Assembly: GCA_964188305.1 (NCBI GenBank)
Contig: OZ076898.1
Strand: one strand, 5' to 3'
Origin: Podarcis bocagei
Lineage: Eukaryota
DNA length: 64,000 nucleotides
The notes beneath the pieces were generated by a model that worked only from the letters and a program-made list of their open reading frames with translations, made no database searches and had not been told where the DNA came from. Shown here in pieces: positions 5,993 through 14,502 of the stretch (position 1 is the stretch's first letter; each line of letters opens with the position of its first letter). A program made the position numbers and the translations under genes.

Positions 5993-8202
5993 TACTTCAG
6001 ACTCCAGGTGGGTGATATCATTTACGAAGTCTTCTCTGAACTTAACTGCAACAACCACCTCCCCCCTTGAGAAGAAAATTAGCACAGCAAAAGTGGTATC
6101 CACTTGAACCATTTTTCATTGTACTTGCTTGTTGGTTTACTTGCAGGAAATTCTTATACTCCACTCTAATACTTCAGGATTTTACCACCTCATGCTACTG
6201 CATTGATAGACAGGTATACTGTGAAGGAGCTAGGAGCTGGGATTTCTGGGTTTTCAGGAAGTAGCGACACTCCCATTTACTTTTAACTCACAGCTGTGAT
6301 GATGGAAAGAGGTTTTAATAGTCAAGACTCCTGGGTCTTCTGGAGGAAGAGTAGGGTCCAGCCCTACAGCAGGGAAGTAGACTCTCCTAGGTTCTTCGCA
6401 GAATTGCCACAAACAGACCTCTTACACTTTAAAAACTGCCTGAAAAATGAGCATTCAATGTGTGCATTTCTATACTGGGGAAGTGAGGAATGGAGGAAGC
6501 TGCACCTGTTCAATTTCTGCCTGTCACACAGGTTAAAGAGACAAAAATAAAATGGGGGGAAAAGTAAAAGTGAACCCACTCTTTCCAGAATAGTTAAAAT
6601 TAGAAAATGCCCTCAAAAACAACTATAGAGCTTGAAAGTATTTAACTATTCCACACTACCTGCCCCTCCCCGTCTTCTTTCCTCTTCGTTTCTGTGGTGA
6701 ATGGGCACAGTTCTCTCGTTCCTGGAGAAAAAGGAACTCTGCCCAGGAAAGTAGGGTGGCTACCAGAATGACGCAGGATGGGGATTAGGCCTGGTAGGTT
6801 GGCCTGAAGAGAGACTGTGGGACTGGACTCTCCTGGGTTTTGTTTCCCAGCTCTGTAGGTCTTCATCTGACTGCACATTCCATAGCACAAGACCCTTATC
6901 TCTTTGCTACACAAAGCCAGTGGCTGCTTGGGCTTCCCCTAGGCAGTTAATACATAACCTGTTTCCCTTTCTGTTGTTTTTTTATGGGAGATTAGCGCAA
7001 GGATTAAAATAACAGCACCTCCTACCTGCTGCCATCCCATGTTCCCTTAACAGATTAAAATGGCCCAAACTTGCCTCTCCTCAGCCACTGCTGTGAGTTT
7101 CTGCACAGCAGTATCCTCAGTCACATGCTGTCCACTTCTCCCTTAGCACAGCACCCATTGGGGGATTTATCCCTATTTTCTCTTTTCTCATCCAGTATCT
7201 TCCAGTCTCCCACTGGACTTGCACTTTTCATGTGCACCGCAGCACTCCCCCCCCTTATTTGTTCCCATCCAAGGGGCAACGGGTCTTGTTTACTCGTCTA
7301 GGAACAGAACATCTGGAGCAATTCGGCACTTAATTACCGCACTTGTCACCGGCATCACCACGGATACAGCGCACGGGAGGGGAGCCGGCCAAGAGGATGA
7401 GATAAATAGATTAGTGGGAGATGGAGAGGGGGAAAATAAATGGAAAAAAGAGGCCAGCAAACAGCATCCTATCTAAATAGTCGTTGTAGCCCAGATGTTG
7501 GGTGTTGCTTGACACCATGTAACAAATACCAGTTGAAGTCCCTCTCAGTCTCTCCAACCTAGAAAAACCCACCAGAACATTTTGCAGATAAGGTTCCCAT
7601 GCTGGCAATCAGAACTCACAACTGCTTCTGAATTCTCTGAAAAAGGAGATGGAATAGAGAGTTTTGGGGAAAGAGGGAGCCAATTAGATGCAGGACTCCT
7701 GGGAGCCAACTGGAAAGGACTACAGGAGAGGGAAAAGACTAGTGGGTGTCATGGAATTCTACTCATATTGATCCAGAGCAAGGCTCAACCCTGCTAAGTC
7801 TAAACCTTAATAGTAGGAGTCCTGGTTTCTTTGTGATTAGGCTTTGACCTGCTAGGTTAAGGCCTATCTCAAACTTTAAAAATCACCTGCCCACCTTTTC
7901 TACTTATTAGATCCTTTTTGTCTTCCCCCAACCCAGGAACCTAATTTGGTTTATCTGTCTGGTTCCTACATCCTTTGAGCTGCTTGTTCCCCACCTACCT
8001 GACTGCACACACCTCTACCATGTCGCCTCTGGCTCTGGCTCTCTTTCCCACATACATAACACCACCTGAAGTGAATGGACGGCCACATTTCTCCCTTTCA
8101 GCAACCCCACTGCAGTTGCAGCCCTTACTTTGGGAGGCTGAGATGGCTTATGGCAGGAGTGAAGAACTTTTTTTCAGAGGGCTGCATTCTCTTCTAGGTA
8201 GC

Positions 8203-8610
8203 TGTCAGGGAACTGCCATCAGAGCATCAGGTGGTGGAGGGACTCAGGCAGGATGAAAGAGACTCAACTGCTGAAGCAGGGACCAGCAGGGGGAGGAGTG
8301 GGTCTCTGAGGGAATGCGAGCAGGAGGGAGGGCTCAGGGAGGCTTCCAGCGAAAACAGTGGGGAGGTATCGGAGTCTCCCATAGGGAGACCCATACCTCG
8401 CAGGAAACTGTCACGCCGTGAGTCCAGGAGACGCGTTTCCGTTAAGGAACTTCTTTGTTGGAAACGCTTCCGCAGACAGCCACTGTCGGACTCTACTAGT
8501 GACTAGAGCAGACATGTCTGAGGAGCTCCGTCACACACGGAGGTTTGTGGGGGCGCACAAACTCTGAGGGAGCACGTTTTCACGCACAAGCAGCTAATCA
8601 AACCCTCACA
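8203..8610 (+). repeat. 5' LTR (408 bp)
   Basis: No difference from 13265-13672 found by eye. Starts TGTCAGGG, ends CCCTCACA. Confidence 0.96.
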
Positions 8611-8655: not shown

Positions 8656-9669
8656 ATGAGCGAACCAACCGGAACCGGAGGAGCAGGGGCTGGAGCTGGT
8701 CCAAGCTTGGAAGATAGATACCGAGCGTTGGAGGTTCAACTGGCCCTGCAGACGGCGAGGCTGGAGGAGAGAAGGGCTCAGGATGCAGACAAGAAGGGGA
8801 GAGCCACTCAATTCCCCAGAAAGGTACCAGGATTGGTGCAGAAATTTGGGGGGGACCCCAAGGACTACCATGCTTTTAGGACAGAGATGCAATATGCCCT
8901 TAATGTGCAGTTCGATGAGTTCCCTGATGAGGAATCGCGAGTTGCTTTTGTAATTGGGCATCTTGAGAAAGGGGCTAGAGACTGGGTGCGACCCCTAATG
9001 GCAACGCACAATGACATACTAAAGGACACAATGAAGTTCTTTCGTGCAATGGATATCATGTTTTCCAGCGATATTGAGGAAGGGGTGGTGCGCAGACAGC
9101 TAATGGCTTGTAAGCAGGGGAGTCAATCTGTCCGTGAATATTGGACTGAGTTTACCATGCTGATTCACAGACTGAGTTGGGATTTATCGGCGGCACCCGT
9201 TCAAATGCTATTTGAAGAAGGTCTTTCTTCGGGGGTGAAAGACGAGCTGGCACGGAGCCCCAGGGCGGAGTCTATGGATCAGCTGACCAAATCTGCGCTG
9301 ACCATAGGAGCGCGGCAGGAGGCAAGAGCCTTGGAGAGGCGGGAAGGGAGAGGGGAACGTTGGAAGGAGTTCCGCATTCCAGACATTCCTGAGCCAGCTT
9401 TCCCGCCGGCAGAGCCGATGGAAATCGGAACAGCGCGCGCGCGCGCATTTTCAAAAACCAGCGAGGGAGCTAAGAAGGAGGGAAAGGGCCCCCGGAAATG
9501 CTATCTCTGCCAACAGCCAGGCCACTTTGCCAGAGTCTGCCCCCAGAGGAAGGAATGGCAAGGGATGGTGGGAGCTGTTGAGGGGGGAGAAGAAGGGGGA
9601 GCGGAGCAGGTAAAAGCCAACGCCTGGTTGCCACAATTGGGGCACTGCAGCCAGGCCAAAGAGCAGTGA
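8656..9669 (+). CDS. gag: Gag (capsid-like domain plus CCHC zinc knuckle), about 337 aa
   Basis: First in-frame ATG after the PBS (MSEPTG...) within track ORF 8545..9669. Retrotransposon-gag-type core (KFGGDPKDYHAF...KQGSQSVREYWTEF), EPMEIG motif and knuckle CYLCQQPGHFARVC. Confidence 0.92.
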   Translation: MSEPTGTGGAGAGAGPSLEDRYRALEVQLALQTARLEERRAQDADKKGRATQFPRKVPGLVQKFGGDPKDYHAFRTEMQYALNVQFDEFPDEESRVAFVIGHLEKGARDWVRPLMATHNDILKDTMKFFRAMDIMFSSDIEEGVVRRQLMACKQGSQSVREYWTEFTMLIHRLSWDLSAAPVQMLFEEGLSSGVKDELARSPRAESMDQLTKSALTIGARQEARALERREGRGERWKEFRIPDIPEPAFPPAEPMEIGTARARAFSKTSEGAKKEGKGPRKCYLCQQPGHFARVCPQRKEWQGMVGAVEGGEEGGAEQVKANAWLPQLGHCSQAKEQ

Positions 9670-12600
9670 AAGTGCCCGTGCCAGAAGCTCCTCGACCTGC
9701 TCTAGTGATTGAAGTGTCGCTAGAGCTGCAGAATGGGCACCCCCTAAAAATAAAGGCGCTATTGGACTCAGGCAGCTCCTGCAATTTTATGAGCAAGGAG
9801 TTTGTTGCTGAACACCAGATACAGACCATCCCTTTAAGCAACCCCCTGCAGGTGACCACGATTGATGGCAGGGAGTTGTTGGGAGGAGGAGTCCGCTTGC
9901 AGACTGTCCCAATGATAATGAGGGTGGCAAGGCACACAGAACTGATAGCGTTTAATGTGGCCACCCTGGGAGGCGCTCCCATTATTTTGGGAATGAGCTG
10001 GCTAGCTCTACATGATCCGCTGGTTGGCTGGCATCAAAGAGTGGTGTCCTTTGGTTCAGCACATTGCCTAGAACACTGCAAAGGGGAGAAGGGTTCAGTA
10101 GGGGCCCAAGCCACCCTAGCAGGGACTGAAGTAATGGGAAAGGTGAAGGTACCACCACAGTATGCAGATCTCAGCGACGTGTTCAGCGAGAAGGAAGCTG
10201 ACCAACTACCACCTCATAGACCCTTTGATTGTCAGATCAATTTACTCCCTGGAGCACAGCTTCCCGTGGGCAAGTTGTATGCCATGTCAGACAGGGAAAT
10301 GCAGGAGTTGCGAGGGTTCATTGACAAGAACCTGAAGAGAGGCTTCATCAGAGAGTCCAAAGCAGCAGGGGGGAGCCCAGTGTTCTTTGTGGACAAAAAA
10401 AATGCGGACAAGCCGAGACTTGTATGTGATTTTAGGCGGCTGAATGCAGTGACTGAACCGGTGGCGTTCCCTATGCCCAGAATTGATGATATTTTGACCA
10501 TGGTGAGGAAGGGAAAGATTTTCACAAAGCTGGATCTAAGGGGGGCGTACAACCTGATACGCATAAGGAAAGGGGATGAATGGAAAACCACCATGTTTAC
10601 CCCTTTGGGGGCGTTTGAATACCTCGTTATGCCATTTGGATTACAAGCAGGCTCCGCGTGTTTTCAATCTTTTATGAACCACGTGCTGGGCCCTTTGCTC
10701 TACAAGAATTGCGTTGCCTTTCTAGATGATGTGTTGGTGTATTCTGAGAATGAGGAGCAACATGTGAGAGACGTCAGAGAAGTGTTGAGCAGACTGCAAG
10801 CCAACAGGCTGTGGGTCAAACTGGAGAAGTGTCGGTTCCATACCAAGGAGGTGGAATTCCTGGGGTACCGCCTGTCAGACAAGGGATTGGCCATGGATCC
10901 CGGCAAGGTACAGGCAGTGCTGGAATGGAAAACACCCAAAACCAAGAAGGATGTGCAGAGGTTCCTAGGGTTTGGAAACTTTTATCGTAAGTTCATCCGC
11001 AACTTCGCCCATCTGACGGCGCCCATCACTGACTGTCTCAGCAGTAAGAAGAAGTTTGTATGGACGGCGGAGGCGGGGCGAGCGTTTGAGGAACTGAAAA
11101 GGGCCTTCGCCTCTGAAGAACAACTTCTGCATGTGGATTTACGAAAGAAGCTAAGGGTTGAAACAGACGCATCTGACAGAGCCATAGGGGCGGTGCTTCT
11201 TCTGCAGCCGGGGAAGGAGGAGTCGGAGTGGCGTCCGTGTGCCTTCTTCTCGCGGAAGCTGAACAAATCCGAGAGGAACTACACGGTGTACGACCGAGAA
11301 CTGCTGGCTATTCATGAGGCGTTCCGGAGATGGAGGCATCTGCTAGTTGGTGCACAACATAAAGTGCAAGTGTGCACGGACCATAAAAATCTAGAGTACT
11401 GGAGAACGGCGCGAGTGCTCAACCAAAGGCAGTTGAGATGGGCCCAAGAGTTCTCCAAATTTAACTTTGAGATTTGTTATGTGCCAGGCCCAGAGAATGT
11501 TAGGGCGGACGCTCTCTCACGCAAGCCTGAATATTTGGAGGGGGAGGGAGCACCCGAAGAAACCCATATCATTCCAGAGGACCGCTGGGTGTGTGGGGCG
11601 ACTTTGGTGGGGCAAAGGGAATTGGTAGAGGGTACGGTGCAGGATGCATACGCCCAGGGGAAACTCAGGGATCTCAGAGGGGAGGAAGACAAACCCGGTG
11701 GTTTTGAGGAGAGAAATGGGGCATTGTATTATAAGGGAGCGTTATATATACCTGAAGGGGAATTGAGGGAGAAAGTACTCAAGCAGCTGCACGATAGCCC
11801 CACAGCAGGGCACTTTGGGCAACACAAAACCATGTGGCTGGTTACCAGGGAATTTTGGTGGCCCAAGGTCAGGGAAGATGTGCGGGAGTATGTGAGAGGG
11901 TGTGAACAATGCCAAAGAGCCAAGGGGGAGAGGCAGGCGCCGGCTGGTTTATTAGAACCACTGCCCACACCTGAGAGACCGTGGGAAGCAGTGGCAATAG
12001 ATTTCATGACTGATCTGCCAAGGTCTAGAGGGAAAACAGCCATCATGGTTGTAGTAGACCTGTTAACTAAAATGGCCCACTTCATAGCCTGCTCACATGC
12101 GGTTACAGCAGAAGAAACCGCCAAATTGTTTGTAGAGAATGTGTTTAGGTTGCATGGCGCCCCCTTGAGGGTGGTTTCAGACCGAGGGAAACAATTTACT
12201 TCCAGGTTCTGGAGGAAGCTCATGAGCTTACTGCATGTAGAGGTTAATTTCTCGACGGCCCGTCATCCTGAAACCAACGGGCAGGCGGAAAGAGCAAATG
12301 GGGTTCTCCAACAATATTTGAGGTGTTATGTTAATGACAGAGAGAATGATTGGGTGGAGAAGCTGGCGTTGGCAGAATTTGCCTACAACAATGCAGAGAA
12401 CGTGTCCACGGGGATGAGCCCCTTTTTGGCTAATCACGGGTGCCATCCCAGAGCCTTCCCAGGGGGGGAGGGGGAGAACTGGAGCGTTCCAGCTGCAGAA
12501 CAGTTCGTGGAAGAAATGGAAGCGATCCATCGCCAGCTCCAACTCAACTTAAACAGGGCTAAGGAGGAATATAAGAGGCAAGCAGACAAAAACAGAAGGG

Positions 12601-13568
12601 AAGGTGAAAGCATCAGGGTGGGGGACCAGGTGTGGCTGTCAACCCAAGGGTTGCCATTCAAAGGAGGTTGTAAGAAATTAAGACCCAAAAGGCTGGGTCC
12701 GTTTGAAGTCATACAGCAGGTCAATCCAGTGGCTTTCAGGCTCCGGTTACCGAACCACATGAAGCTGCACCCAGTTTTTCACAGGTCGTTGCTGTCACCG
12801 TATAGAGGAGACAGTGAGGGGAGGGTCACTAGGGGACCAGCAATGGAGGAGAAGGAACACAGCTACCATGTAGCGGAGATCCTCGATTCCAGGTGGAAGG
12901 GAGATCAAGTAGAGTATTTGGTAATGTGGGAAGGGGAACCGGAGTCGGAAAACACCTGGGTTAGGGCAGAGGATGTCAATGACGAGGTTTTAATAGAGAC
13001 TTTTCATCAGAGGTTCCCACGTAAACCTCAGCCTGTAGCGAGGTTCCGAAGGGAATACTTTGCCACCACCGACGAGGAAGAGGAGTTGGAGGGGTTCCCA
13101 GATTCTGAAGAGGAGGAGGATTCAGCTGGCCAGGACGACGATCGATGGAGAGAATTGTTCGAGACGTCAGAAGATGAGGAAGATTCGTTTCGGGGTTTTA
13201 GCCCTTCACCTCCCAGGGGGGAGGAATTGGGAGGGGGTGAGGGGGGCCCTGGAGGGGAGGTGGATGTCAGGGAACTGCCATCAGAGCATCAGGTGGTGGA
13301 GGGACTCAGGCAGGATGAAAGAGACTCAACTGCTGAAGCAGGGACCAGCAGGGGGAGGAGTGGGTCTCTGAGGGAATGCGAGCAGGAGGGAGGGCTCAGG
13401 GAGGCTTCCAGCGAAAACAGTGGGGAGGTATCGGAGTCTCCCATAGGGAGACCCATACCTCGCAGGAAACTGTCACGCCGTGAGTCCAGGAGACGCGTTT
13501 CCGTTAAGGAACTTCTTTGTTGGAAACGCTTCCGCAGACAGCCACTGTCGGACTCTACTAGTGACTAG
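9582..13568 (+). CDS. pol: Pol polyprotein (protease-RT-RNase H-integrase-chromodomain-acidic/basic tail), -1 frame relative to gag
   Basis: Frame open from 9582 (after TGA at 9579) to TAG 13566-13568. Protease ALLDSGS; RT LDLRGAY, VMPFGL, AFLDDVLVYS; RNase H VETDASD; integrase HHCC (LHDSPTAGH...CEQC), DDE (IDF/SDRG/AERAN), GPF motif; chromodomain YHVAEILDSR...YLVMWEG...ENTW. Confidence 0.96.
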   Translation, partial: GGRRRGSGAGKSQRLVATIGALQPGQRAVKVPVPEAPRPALVIEVSLELQNGHPLKIKALLDSGSSCNFMSKEFVAEHQIQTIPLSNPLQVTTIDGRELLGGGVRLQTVPMIMRVARHTELIAFNVATLGGAPIILGMSWLALHDPLVGWHQRVVSFGSAHCLEHCKGEKGSVGAQATLAGTEVMGKVKVPPQYADLSDVFSEKEADQLPPHRPFDCQINLLPGAQLPVGKLYAMSDREMQELRGFIDKNLKRGFIRESKAAGGSPVFFVDKKNADKPRLVCDFRRLNAVTEPVAFPMPRIDDILTMVRKGKIFTKLDLRGAYNLIRIRKGDEWKTTMFTPLGAFEYLVMPFGLQAGSACFQSFMNHVLGPLLYKNCVAFLDDVLVYSENEEQHVRDVREVLSRLQANRLWVKLEKCRFHTKEVEFLGYRLSDKGLAMDPGKVQAVLEWKTPKTKKDVQRFLGFGNFYRKFIRNFAHLTAPITDCLSSKKKFVWTAEAGRAFEELKRAFASEEQLLHVDLRKKLRVETDASDRAIGAVLLLQPGKEESEWRPCAFFSRKLNKSERNYTVYDRELLAIHEAFRRWRHLLVGAQHKVQVCTDHKNLEYWRTARVLNQRQLRWAQEFSKFNFEICYVPGPENVRADALSRKPEYLEGEGAPEETHIIPEDRWVCGATLVGQRELVEGTVQDAYAQGKLRDLRGEEDKPGGFEERNGALYYKGALYIPEGELREKVLKQLHDSPTAGHFGQHKTMWLVTREFWWPKVREDVREYVRGCEQCQRAKGERQAPAGLLEPLPTPERPWEAVAIDFMTDLPRSRGKTAIMVVVDLLTKMAHFIACSHAVTAEETAKLFVENVFRLHGAPLRVVSDRGKQFTSRFWRKLMSLLHVEVNFSTARHPETNGQAERANGVLQQYLRCYVNDRENDWVEKLALAEFAYNNAENVSTGMSPFLANHGCHPRAFPGGEGENWSVPAAEQFVEEMEAIHRQLQLNLNRAKEEYKRQADKNRREGESIRVGDQVWLSTQGLPFKGGCKKLRPKRLGPFEVIQQVNPVAFRLRLPNHMKLHPVFHRSLLSPYRGDSEGRVTRGPAMEEKEHSYHVAEILDSRWKGDQVEYLVMWEGEPESENTWVRAEDVNDEVLIETFHQRFPRKPQPVARFRREYFATTDEEEELEGFPDSEEEEDSAGQDDDRWRELFETSEDEEDSFRGFSPSPPRGEELGGGEGGPGGEVDVRELPSEHQVVEGLRQDERDSTAEAGTSRGRSGSLRECEQEGGLREASSENSGEVSESPIGRPIPRRKLSRRESRRRVSVKELLCWKRFRRQPLSDSTSD
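9609..9677 (+). promoter_or_regulatory. Predicted -1 programmed ribosomal frameshift cassette (slip site G_GTA_AAA, 6-nt spacer, H-type pseudoknot)
   Basis: Heptamer 9609-9615 is in gag phase. Stem 1 GCCTGGTTGC (9622-9631) pairs with GCAGCCAGGC (9647-9656), one G-U pair. Stem 2 GGGCACT (9640-9646) pairs with AGTGCCC (9671-9677). Confidence 0.75.
13251..13264 (+). promoter_or_regulatory. Polypurine tract (PPT)
   Basis: GGAGGGGAGGTGGA immediately 5' of the 3' LTR. Confidence 0.75.
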
Positions 13569-13672
13569 AGCAGACATGTCTGAGGAGCTCCGTCACACAC
13601 GGAGGTTTGTGGGGGCGCACAAACTCTGAGGGAGCACGTTTTCACGCACAAGCAGCTAATCAAACCCTCACA
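13265..13672 (+). repeat. 3' LTR (408 bp), first 304 nt overlapped by the pol ORF
   Basis: Direct repeat of 8203-8610, preceded by a purine-rich PPT and followed by the GTAGC TSD. Confidence 0.96.
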
Positions 13673-14502
13673 GTAGCCTTATGAGGACTGCATGCCAGAG
13701 GTGGGGATGGGGCTACAAGCAAAAGTGGACAGAACAATTAATGTTAATTTTACCTTTGTGCAGTAAGCTTGTGCTTATGTCCACTCAAATGTCCCTCTCT
13801 ATCTTCCACTGAGATAAGCAAGAAGCATTATTAGGGTTCAAGGACATATTGCATCCAGGCCAAAACACCCAAGGAGGGTGCAAAGAAGGGCTAGTGAAGG
13901 GTGTGGCCCGGGGGGCTGTATCCTGACAACCAGATAAAGATGCCTGGAGGGCCACATTCAGATCCTGGGACGAAGGTTTCCCATTCCTGGTGTATAGGCA
14001 CAGTAAGAAGTCACAGAAAATTGAATGTTGTGCCATTCCCCTTCCCCCACCCCCTGCTTTTTCATATTTTCTTAGGAGAGGCTGAGAATAAGGAACATAA
14101 GAACACAAGCCTGTAAGAACAAGCCAATGGCCCATCTAGTCCAGCATTCTGTTTGCGCAGTGCCTGACCAGATGCCTGGGGGGAAGCTTGCAAGCTGGAC
14201 ATGAGCGCAACAGCACTCTGCCCACCTGCGGTTCCCAGCAAGTGGGATTAGAGGTATAATGAGAACAGAAAGGCAGGTTCCTCTGGAAAGAAATCCTTGT
14301 TGGTTAGAGAGATGGGAAACATTGGGAGCCAGGATTCCTGTTTGTAAACAAGCAGGTTTGCCACCTTTTTTCTTTTCTTGCAGGGCTCCTGTCACGTAAC
14401 AGGCACAAGTTCAATAAATGCTGCCTTTTCCTGTATGGAGCTGCCCTACTGGCATATACCTAACCTGTTGCCTTCACGCTGACTTTAAAAAAAAGGCACA
14501 GC

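Follow-up and report, generated by a model that had tools for sequence, protein, structure and literature searches.

The 64-kb window analysed here, a stretch of 64,000 nucleotides from contig OZ076898.1 of the lizard Podarcis bocagei, contains an intact Ty3/Gypsy chromovirus of 5470 bp, a recent insertion, whose integrase tail carries two tandem units resembling the motifs by which host proteins bind the integrase-binding domain (IBD) of LEDGF/p75. Both units lie in a predicted disordered segment behind the chromodomain, and we see an even chance that they are functional linear motifs imitating the IBD-binding motifs (IBMs) of host LEDGF/HRP2 partners. The binding partner, the phosphorylation and the effect on integration are what we infer beyond the motifs themselves; overall, the tail appears to be a well-supported candidate for integrase-tail tethering.

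Directly after the chromodomain, Pol reads ...FHQRFPRKPQPVARFRREYF-ATTDEEEE-LEGF-PDSEEEEDSAGQDDD-RWRELF-ETSEDEEDS-FRGF-SPSPP..., and the Pol-frame translation of positions 12900-13300 (+) contains ...ARFRREYFATTDEEEELEGFPDSEEEEDSAGQDDDRWRELFETSEDEEDSFRGFSPS..., with ten residues between the end of the chromodomain match and the start of the first unit (motif 1). According to the published definition (PMC9987994), motifs that interact with TFIIS N-terminal domains (TND-interacting motifs, TIMs) have an obligate short helix with F/V/L/I side chains anchored in a first pocket, a flexible linker of 8-16 residues that is acidic, rich in E/D/G/S/T and phosphorylated by CK2, and an optional FxGF, which fills a second pocket and is essential for all known LEDGF/HRP2 partners. 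The interaction of FxGF with the IBD is conserved across animals and is found in Drosophila between JIL-1 and JASPer (PMC6877644, PMC11910589). As read from its translation, motif 2 agrees with every sequence-level criterion of an FxGF-class TIM, including a full FxGF (FRGF, 13188-13199), and the linkers of the two units contain the CK2-type consensus S/T-x-x-D/E at T1134, T1135, T1167 and S1168 (sites predicted from the sequence only). The sequence-only reading had placed the units at 13044-13097 and 13146-13199, which is exact on the Pol-frame translation; the translation likewise bears out its description of motif 2 as a full fit and of motif 1 as carrying L for F, and the architecture of the units (a helix ending in F, an acidic/S/T linker of 8-9 residues and FxGF) matches both the definition in PMC9987994 and four solved IBMs.

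These reference IBMs were taken from IBD-fusion constructs in the Protein Data Bank (PDB), which were retrieved by a protein search with the LEDGF IBD sequence. The constructs contain two motifs of JPO2 (M1, ..EVADIF-NAPSDDEE-FVGF; M2, ..LRRIF-IEDTDSETED-FAGF) and one each of POGZ (P0271; ..LHQLF-EGESETES-FYGF) and MLL1 (..RRFRAVF-(14 residues)-FLGF), so that the two motifs claimed earlier for JPO2 and the one claimed for POGZ are found in the construct sequences. Linkers of 8, 8, 10 and 14 residues in the solved IBMs compare with 8 and 9 residues in the window. From the four solved motifs we derived a rule, namely a hydrophobic residue followed by F, 8-14 residues with at least four D/E/S/T and at most one K/R, and FxGF. 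This rule matches motif 2 strictly and motif 1 only with L allowed. When 268 other Gypsy proteins, 223,496 residues in total, were scanned with it, 13 integrase tails matched, all from three lizard lineages, and the only match outside those tails is a false positive in the kinase domain of a chimeric gene model.

Profile comparison pointed in the same direction. Aligning 15 retrotransposon motifs with the four IBMs by hhalign gave a probability of 89.7% and a pairwise E value of 1.8e-6 and brought helix-F, linker and FxGF into register. When a hidden Markov model built from the retrotransposon tails only was compared with 177,635 distinct PDB sequences, 6EMO (LEDGF/p75 IBD-JPO2 M1) ranked first, aligned on DIFNAPSDDEEFVGF at a non-significant E value; this first rank is predicted by mimicry of IBMs and is unlikely otherwise, because few PDB chains contain an IBM. 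A phmmer search of PDB with a single tail gave no match, and 6EMO was found only with the 15-motif profile.

Two kinds of match to a naive combination of acidic residues and FxGF were discarded as parts of folded domains: the reverse transcriptase motif ..VEFLG[FY].., which occurs in many Gypsy Pols (e.g. P0171, P0224 and P0264; Pol aa ~395-401 in the window), and the DFG region of kinases. Separately, in several database entries, chimeric gene models join pieces of Gypsy Pol to host domains (P0161 from Hemibagrus guttatus; P0005/P0008 from Ranitomeya and others); the fused host domains comprise protein kinase and trypsin-like or metalloprotease-like segments, and such entries can mislead architecture searches.

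Within the window, the two units stand alone: in a six-frame scan of all 64 kb, motifs 1 and 2 are the only [FLWYIM]xGF sites with at least five acidic residues among the preceding ten. After shuffling the 84-residue tail (200,000 trials), at least one strict helix-F/linker/FxGF match was obtained in 0.5% of the trials and two relaxed matches in 0.07%. AlphaFold2, run on a nine-sequence alignment of chromodomain plus tail, predicted a helix at Pol aa 1124-1131 (VARFRREY) and a three-residue helix at Pol aa 1162-1164, ahead of the linker of motif 2, and assigned pLDDT values below 50 to the rest of the tail behind a confidently folded chromodomain. This is the picture that would be expected for short helices in a disordered tail.

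Conservation of the FxGF spacing in relatives had been named beforehand as the point on which the proposal could fail; the comparison was carried out, and the motif survived in several lizard lineages. A word-indexed search with the Pol tail region returned three close Podarcis paralogues only (P0001-P0003), and when five full-length Pols were used for a profile search, the seed words came from the protease-reverse transcriptase end, so that this search was blind to the tail. More distant members were reached with chromodomain plus tail as query, searched exhaustively by HMMER against 1.84 billion cluster representatives. The three paralogues keep unit 1 as RFRR[EK]YF[AG]TTDEE[EQ]E[LM]EGF and unit 2 as RWR[EG][MV]F[EK]TS[ED]D[ED]..SFRGF, while the spacer between the units varies in sequence and length. 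Both units are canonical in P0004 (64% identity; RFWEEQF-ATTDEEEED-FVGF and RWEAVF-ESTDDDSSS-FRGF), and P0006 (49% identity) has the second unit only (QWKTVF-ESDENEDTD-FLGF). Unit 2 is thus kept as F[RL]GF in P0001-P0004 and P0006. Unit 1 ends in LEGF in the window, P0001 and P0002, in MEGF in P0003, and in FVGF and FEGF in the Podarcis fragments P0007 and P0032. The codon concerned, TTG or ATG, is one base apart from TTC/TTT; the canonical F is the commoner state in unit 1 and the L/M of the window's subfamily its single-base derivative. Beyond this family, the full-Pol profile search added two lineages: FFDDWLF-TPTLSAST-F[QHR]GF stands at the same place in a sister Podarcis family (P0025, P0154-P0156; 56% identity), and an Anolis carolinensis family (P0226, P0238; 43-44% identity) reads RLRDIF-AEPSDEDS-FEGF. 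The motif is absent from the other chromoviral tails examined, which came from Anolis, Podarcis, Rhineura, Vipera, Crotalus, amphibians and fish.

The pattern of identity follows the units. Pairwise identity is 0.77 in unit 1 and 0.66 in unit 2, compared with 0.77 in the folded chromodomain, and drops to 0.25-0.31 in the spacer and 0.24 in the stretch after unit 2, each with ~23% indel columns. In motif 1, F1127, F1132, T1135, G1143 and F1144 are invariant in five Pols; an alignment of 15 motif instances leaves three columns without variation, namely the anchor F and, within FxGF, the G and the final F. One could ask whether such conservation belongs to the nucleic acid, that is, to a purine-rich cis element near the polypurine tract and the 3' long terminal repeat (LTR) with a role in plus-strand priming or RNA packaging, of which the peptide would be a by-product. 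The region lies 50-220 nt upstream of the polypurine tract and is GA-rich through its GAR/GAY codons, and the GGGEGGPGGE stretch encoded by the tract is itself highly conserved in relatives (0.62-0.92 identity), which is expected because the tract is a cis-acting DNA element. Nevertheless, the codons argue otherwise. Between the window and two related loci (L002 and L001), the codons of the invariant F (TTC/TTT) and G (GGT/GGG) differ synonymously, and linker codons drift freely among acidic and S/T codons. Since invariant residues are kept through synonymous changes, selection appears to act on the peptide and not on a nucleotide element. Moreover, the poorly conserved stretch with an identity of 0.24 separates the motifs from the polypurine tract, and in the Anolis lineage the peptide is retained although the surrounding sequence differs. 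An origin of the conservation at the nucleotide level therefore seems highly improbable to us, and the alignments indicate that both motifs are under protein-level constraint. The simpler idea that the acidic codons are the polypurine tract itself was rejected, as the tract (13251-13264) is downstream of both motifs. Both loci derive from short contigs of related elements with canonical FxGF tails, L001 from a metagenome assembly (ENA ERZ27260045, contig k141_42000) and L002 from Logan (ERR14657319).

Another explanation takes the segment as a generic acidic disordered tail, in which FxGF would have no specific function and its conservation would reflect short divergence within one family. Many chromoviral integrases do have acidic, S-rich tails without FxGF (P0015, P0085, P0166-P0168), and the nearest database proteins, 'Gypsy retrotransposon integrase-like protein 1' entries of Podarcis muralis, are 87-93% identical overall. 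Nor does structure prediction of a complex lend support to a specific contact: a co-fold of the bird PSIP1 IBD (P0275:1-100) with the 66-residue tail scored 0.01, obtained with ESMFold2 without alignments, a method unproven on peptides and disordered chains, and counts neither for nor against binding. On the other hand, the motif is kept at 30-60% tail identity (P0004, P0006 and the P0025 lineage) and in the Anolis lineage, which is 43-44% identical overall and in which the adjacent spacer is scrambled with indels. Shuffle probabilities of 0.005 and 0.0007 and a background of 1 false match in 223,496 residues are likewise hard to reconcile with mere composition, and we consider a generic tail improbable and already disfavoured.

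If the units do imitate IBMs, each would, within the intasome, place its short helix, with F1132 or F1165 as the anchor, in the first hydrophobic pocket on the IBD or another TND, its acidic linker, probably phosphorylated by CK2, would rest on a basic patch, with the CK2-type sites tuning affinity, and [L/F]xGF would occupy the second pocket. LEDGF/PSIP1 or HRP2/HDGFL2, which read H3K36me2/3 through their PWWP domains, could in this way place, hold or stabilise the integrase on transcribed chromatin. The tandem arrangement might raise avidity in the manner of JPO2, or it might bind a dimer of LEDGF; dimerisation of LEDGF strengthens the binding of MLL1 (PMC10854676).

The same conservation, however, would also be seen if the motifs were functional and had a partner other than LEDGF/HRP2. 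Candidates include another TND (TFIIS, Elongin A, IWS1, MED26 or PNUTS), a histone surface of the kind bound by acidic-aromatic chaperone-like motifs, a receptor of the Atg8/LC3-interacting region (LIR) type, given a WREL core after DDD, and an intramolecular contact with the basic, LTR-encoded C-terminus of the integrase. Conservation and synonymous changes show constraint and name no partner, TIMs bind several TNDs, with helix plus acidic linker being sufficient for many (PMC9987994), motif 1 of the window copy is without the first F, and the strongly basic Pol end could bind an acidic segment in cis. Against such a partner, invariance falls precisely on the anchor F and on FxGF, spaced as in IBMs, and FxGF is specific to and essential for LEDGF/HRP2 partners (PMC9987994). 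In PDB, the top match is neither a histone chaperone nor a LIR peptide but an IBM, and the LIR reading in particular fits poorly with P0001, where the core reads WREM, a W without the canonical L/I/V following. Altogether, we regard a different partner as rather unlikely.

Several observations weigh against LEDGF/HRP2 mimicry. Motif 1 reads LEGF, with L replacing the first F, and departs from strict FxGF, and this first F, replaced by L/M in motif 1 of the window and its closest relatives, is reported to be important in known partners. The linker of the sister Podarcis family (P0025) is S/T-rich and not acidic, the motif-less chromoviral tails are often acidic and serine-rich, so the resemblance is partly compositional, and the match to 6EMO has an E value of 0.59, which is not significant alone. 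The tail may also be lost from the mature integrase on protease processing, and the intact chromodomain of the window copy could be the real targeting module.

The distribution of motif and chromodomain was placed on trees built from the reverse transcriptase-to-SH3 columns with tails excluded (FastTree, IQ-TREE; the tail-less P0159 and P0160 were left out). In both trees, all motif bearers fall within one squamate clade, which also has motif-less members from Anolis, Podarcis, a snake and one other. Full support (100/100) unites the window family with the P0025 family, and within this clade no member with a tail lacks the motif; for the Anolis pair P0226/P0238, the sister is P0167, a Podarcis element without the motif (99/97). 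Monophyly of the motif bearers was rejected by the approximately unbiased (AU) test (p 0.006; the group was defined after the first tree had been viewed), which leads to two gains, or one gain and several losses. In P0168, a motif-less Anolis carolinensis element, the tail has ..DIVMPDEEENLGF.., resembling a degenerate helix/acidic-linker/xLGF. This segment may be a decayed remnant of the motif, which would fit an older origin followed by losses.

With a Pfam Chromo cut-off of 25.1 bits, the window family, with FxGF, scores 44.5 bits. The P0025 family of Podarcis, also with FxGF, stays sub-threshold at 15-19 bits, and in the FxGF-bearing Anolis proteins P0226/P0238 no chromodomain is detected. 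Proteins without FxGF score 57.7 bits (P0167, Podarcis) and 37.8 bits (P0168, Anolis). Since FxGF is kept where the chromodomain is sub-threshold or undetected, the motif is independent of the chromodomain; that it replaces the chromodomain functionally is a further step that may hold. The window lineage chromodomain has WEGE where related chromoviruses carry a third aromatic cage residue (WKGY or WVGF), and the histone-mark reader may be decaying in motif-bearing lineages. One possible scenario, which we advance tentatively and consider somewhat doubtful, is that squamate Gypsy elements evolved LEDGF/HRP2-mimicking tail motifs, either repeatedly or with long retention, while the ancestral chromodomain decayed or was lost in some of them, and that integration thereby switched from heterochromatin to transcribed H3K36me chromatin through convergent mimicry of a short linear motif (SLiM), which would make these elements a retrotransposon counterpart to the lentiviral use of LEDGF.

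The element that hosts both motifs shows TG..CA LTRs, a target-site duplication, gag, the order protease-reverse transcriptase-RNase H-integrase and a C-terminal chromodomain, as is characteristic of chromoviruses, and its gag, pol and LTR features all look intact. In Pfam terms, the Pol domains follow as protease, reverse transcriptase, RNase H, integrase H2C2 zinc finger, integrase core, Tf2-type SH3 and chromodomain, and then the disordered tail. The two LTRs are 99.5-99.8% identical by self-BLAST, with ~2 differing positions in 408 bp; because they are nearly identical and the 5-bp duplication GTAGC is intact, the insertion is very recent. Self-BLAST found no second copy of the element within the 64-kb window. 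The pol open reading frame (ORF) continues through the polypurine tract and then for ~100 codons into the 3' LTR (13265-13568), and part of U3 is therefore protein-coding. The resulting Pol C-terminus is strongly basic (..RRKLSRRESRRRVSVKELLCWKRFRRQPLSDSTSD), which is conserved in the Podarcis paralogues P0001-P0003, and could be a nuclear-localisation or nucleic-acid-binding segment.

Table 1 Features of the Ty3/Gypsy element in window coordinates.
Feature	Position	Strand	Basis or remark
Target-site duplication GTAGC, 5' copy	8198-8202	+	Bases read directly
5' LTR, TG...CA ends, 408 bp	8203-8610	+	Direct repeat, self-BLAST, boundaries read
gag ORF, capsid-like domain and CCHC zinc knuckle	8656-9669	+	Translation; Pfam Retrotrans_gag, Ty3_capsid, zf-CCHC
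pol ORF, 1300 codons, -1 frame relative to gag	9666-13568	+	Translation, Pfam
Integrase chromodomain, Pol aa 1067-1116	12864-13013	+	Pfam Chromo 44.5 bits; AlphaFold2 pLDDT ~90
Motif 1, (V)ARFRREYF + ATTDEEEE (8 aa) + LEGF, IBM/TIM-like	13044-13097	+	Pol aa 1127-1144
Variable acidic spacer separating motifs 1 and 2	13098-13145	+	Low identity, indels
Motif 2, WRELF + ETSEDEEDS (9 aa) + FRGF	13146-13199	+	Pol aa 1161-1178; full fit to the IBM/TIM rule
Polypurine tract ggaggggaggtgga	13251-13264	+	Directly 5' of 3' LTR; encodes part of GGGEGGPGGE
3' LTR, TG...CA ends, 408 bp	13265-13672	+	pol ORF enters it, stop at 13568
Target-site duplication GTAGC, 3' copy	13673-13677	+	Directly after 3' LTR

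The choice of integration site determines both the harm and the success of mobile elements, and, to our knowledge, few tethering mechanisms are understood, namely HIV-LEDGF, MLV-BET, Ty1-AC40, Ty3-TFIIIB, Ty5-Sir4 and chromodomains. Already known are tethering by integrase C-terminal peptides, the use of LEDGF as a tether by lentiviruses, and FxGF motifs in host proteins, among them POGZ. What we propose as new is the combination, a Ty3/Gypsy integrase that would carry a copy of a cellular LEDGF-binding motif. The sequence-only reading knew of no such description for Ty3/Gypsy integrases, and a full-text literature search, in which most subscription journals were not covered, found no paper linking FxGF, IBM or TIM motifs to LTR-retrotransposon integrases. 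If LEDGF/HRP2 mimicry is true, this would be the first retroelement outside the lentiviruses for which use of the LEDGF/TND hub is proposed; tethering would rely on a mimicked motif instead of the catalytic core, with insertion sites chosen as by HIV, and the element would illustrate how new targeting peptides evolve in disordered integrase tails. The motif-less relatives in the same squamate Gypsy clade provide a natural comparison group.

Among known systems, the units are closest to the host IBMs of JPO2/CDCA7L, POGZ, MLL1/KMT2A, IWS1, ASK, MED1 and Drosophila JIL-1, to which they align position by position and with which they share the disordered context, a helix ending in a hydrophobic residue and F, a linker of 8-14 acidic/S/T residues with CK2-type sites, FxGF and acidic residues thereafter. 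As in JPO2, the motifs of the window integrase are in tandem, and the Anolis motif DIFAEPSDEDSFEGF is very close to JPO2 M1 DIFNAPSDDEEFVGF. Host IBMs sit in transcription regulators of the host, the window motifs in the Pol/integrase of a retrotransposon, and motif 1 of the window copy has L (M in P0003) for the first F. POGZ, a domesticated pogo transposase, offers a parallel as a mobile-element-derived protein with an FxGF motif, which in POGZ binds LEDGF; however, POGZ is encoded by a host gene that descends from a DNA transposon, whereas the motif described here is carried by an active-looking LTR retrotransposon.

Lentiviral integrases bind the IBD through a folded interface of the catalytic-core dimer and not through a linear FxGF motif, whereas the window integrase is proposed to make the contact through its disordered tail, by means of a SLiM that mimics a cellular one. 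The proposed tether, LEDGF/p75, its IBD and the proposed integration into transcribed H3K36me chromatin would nonetheless be the same as for HIV-1 and other lentiviruses (PMC3185499, PMC7459421). Short C-terminal integrase peptides that bind host chromatin or transcription factors and set integration sites are known from Ty5 (TD5 hexapeptide-Sir4), Ty1 (TD1/bNLS-AC40) and MLV (tail-BET ET domain), and the host-factor binding proposed here would follow this design (PMC7459421); host partner and chromatin class differ, and those systems have genetic and biochemical proof where the present one has sequence evidence. Finally, in the account given in PMC7459421 of the work of Gao et al. 2008, chromodomain targeting concerns the same class of element and the same C-terminal targeting region, and the motifs follow directly after the chromodomain; unlike this folded reader of histone marks, they appear to be linear peptides of a partner-binding type.

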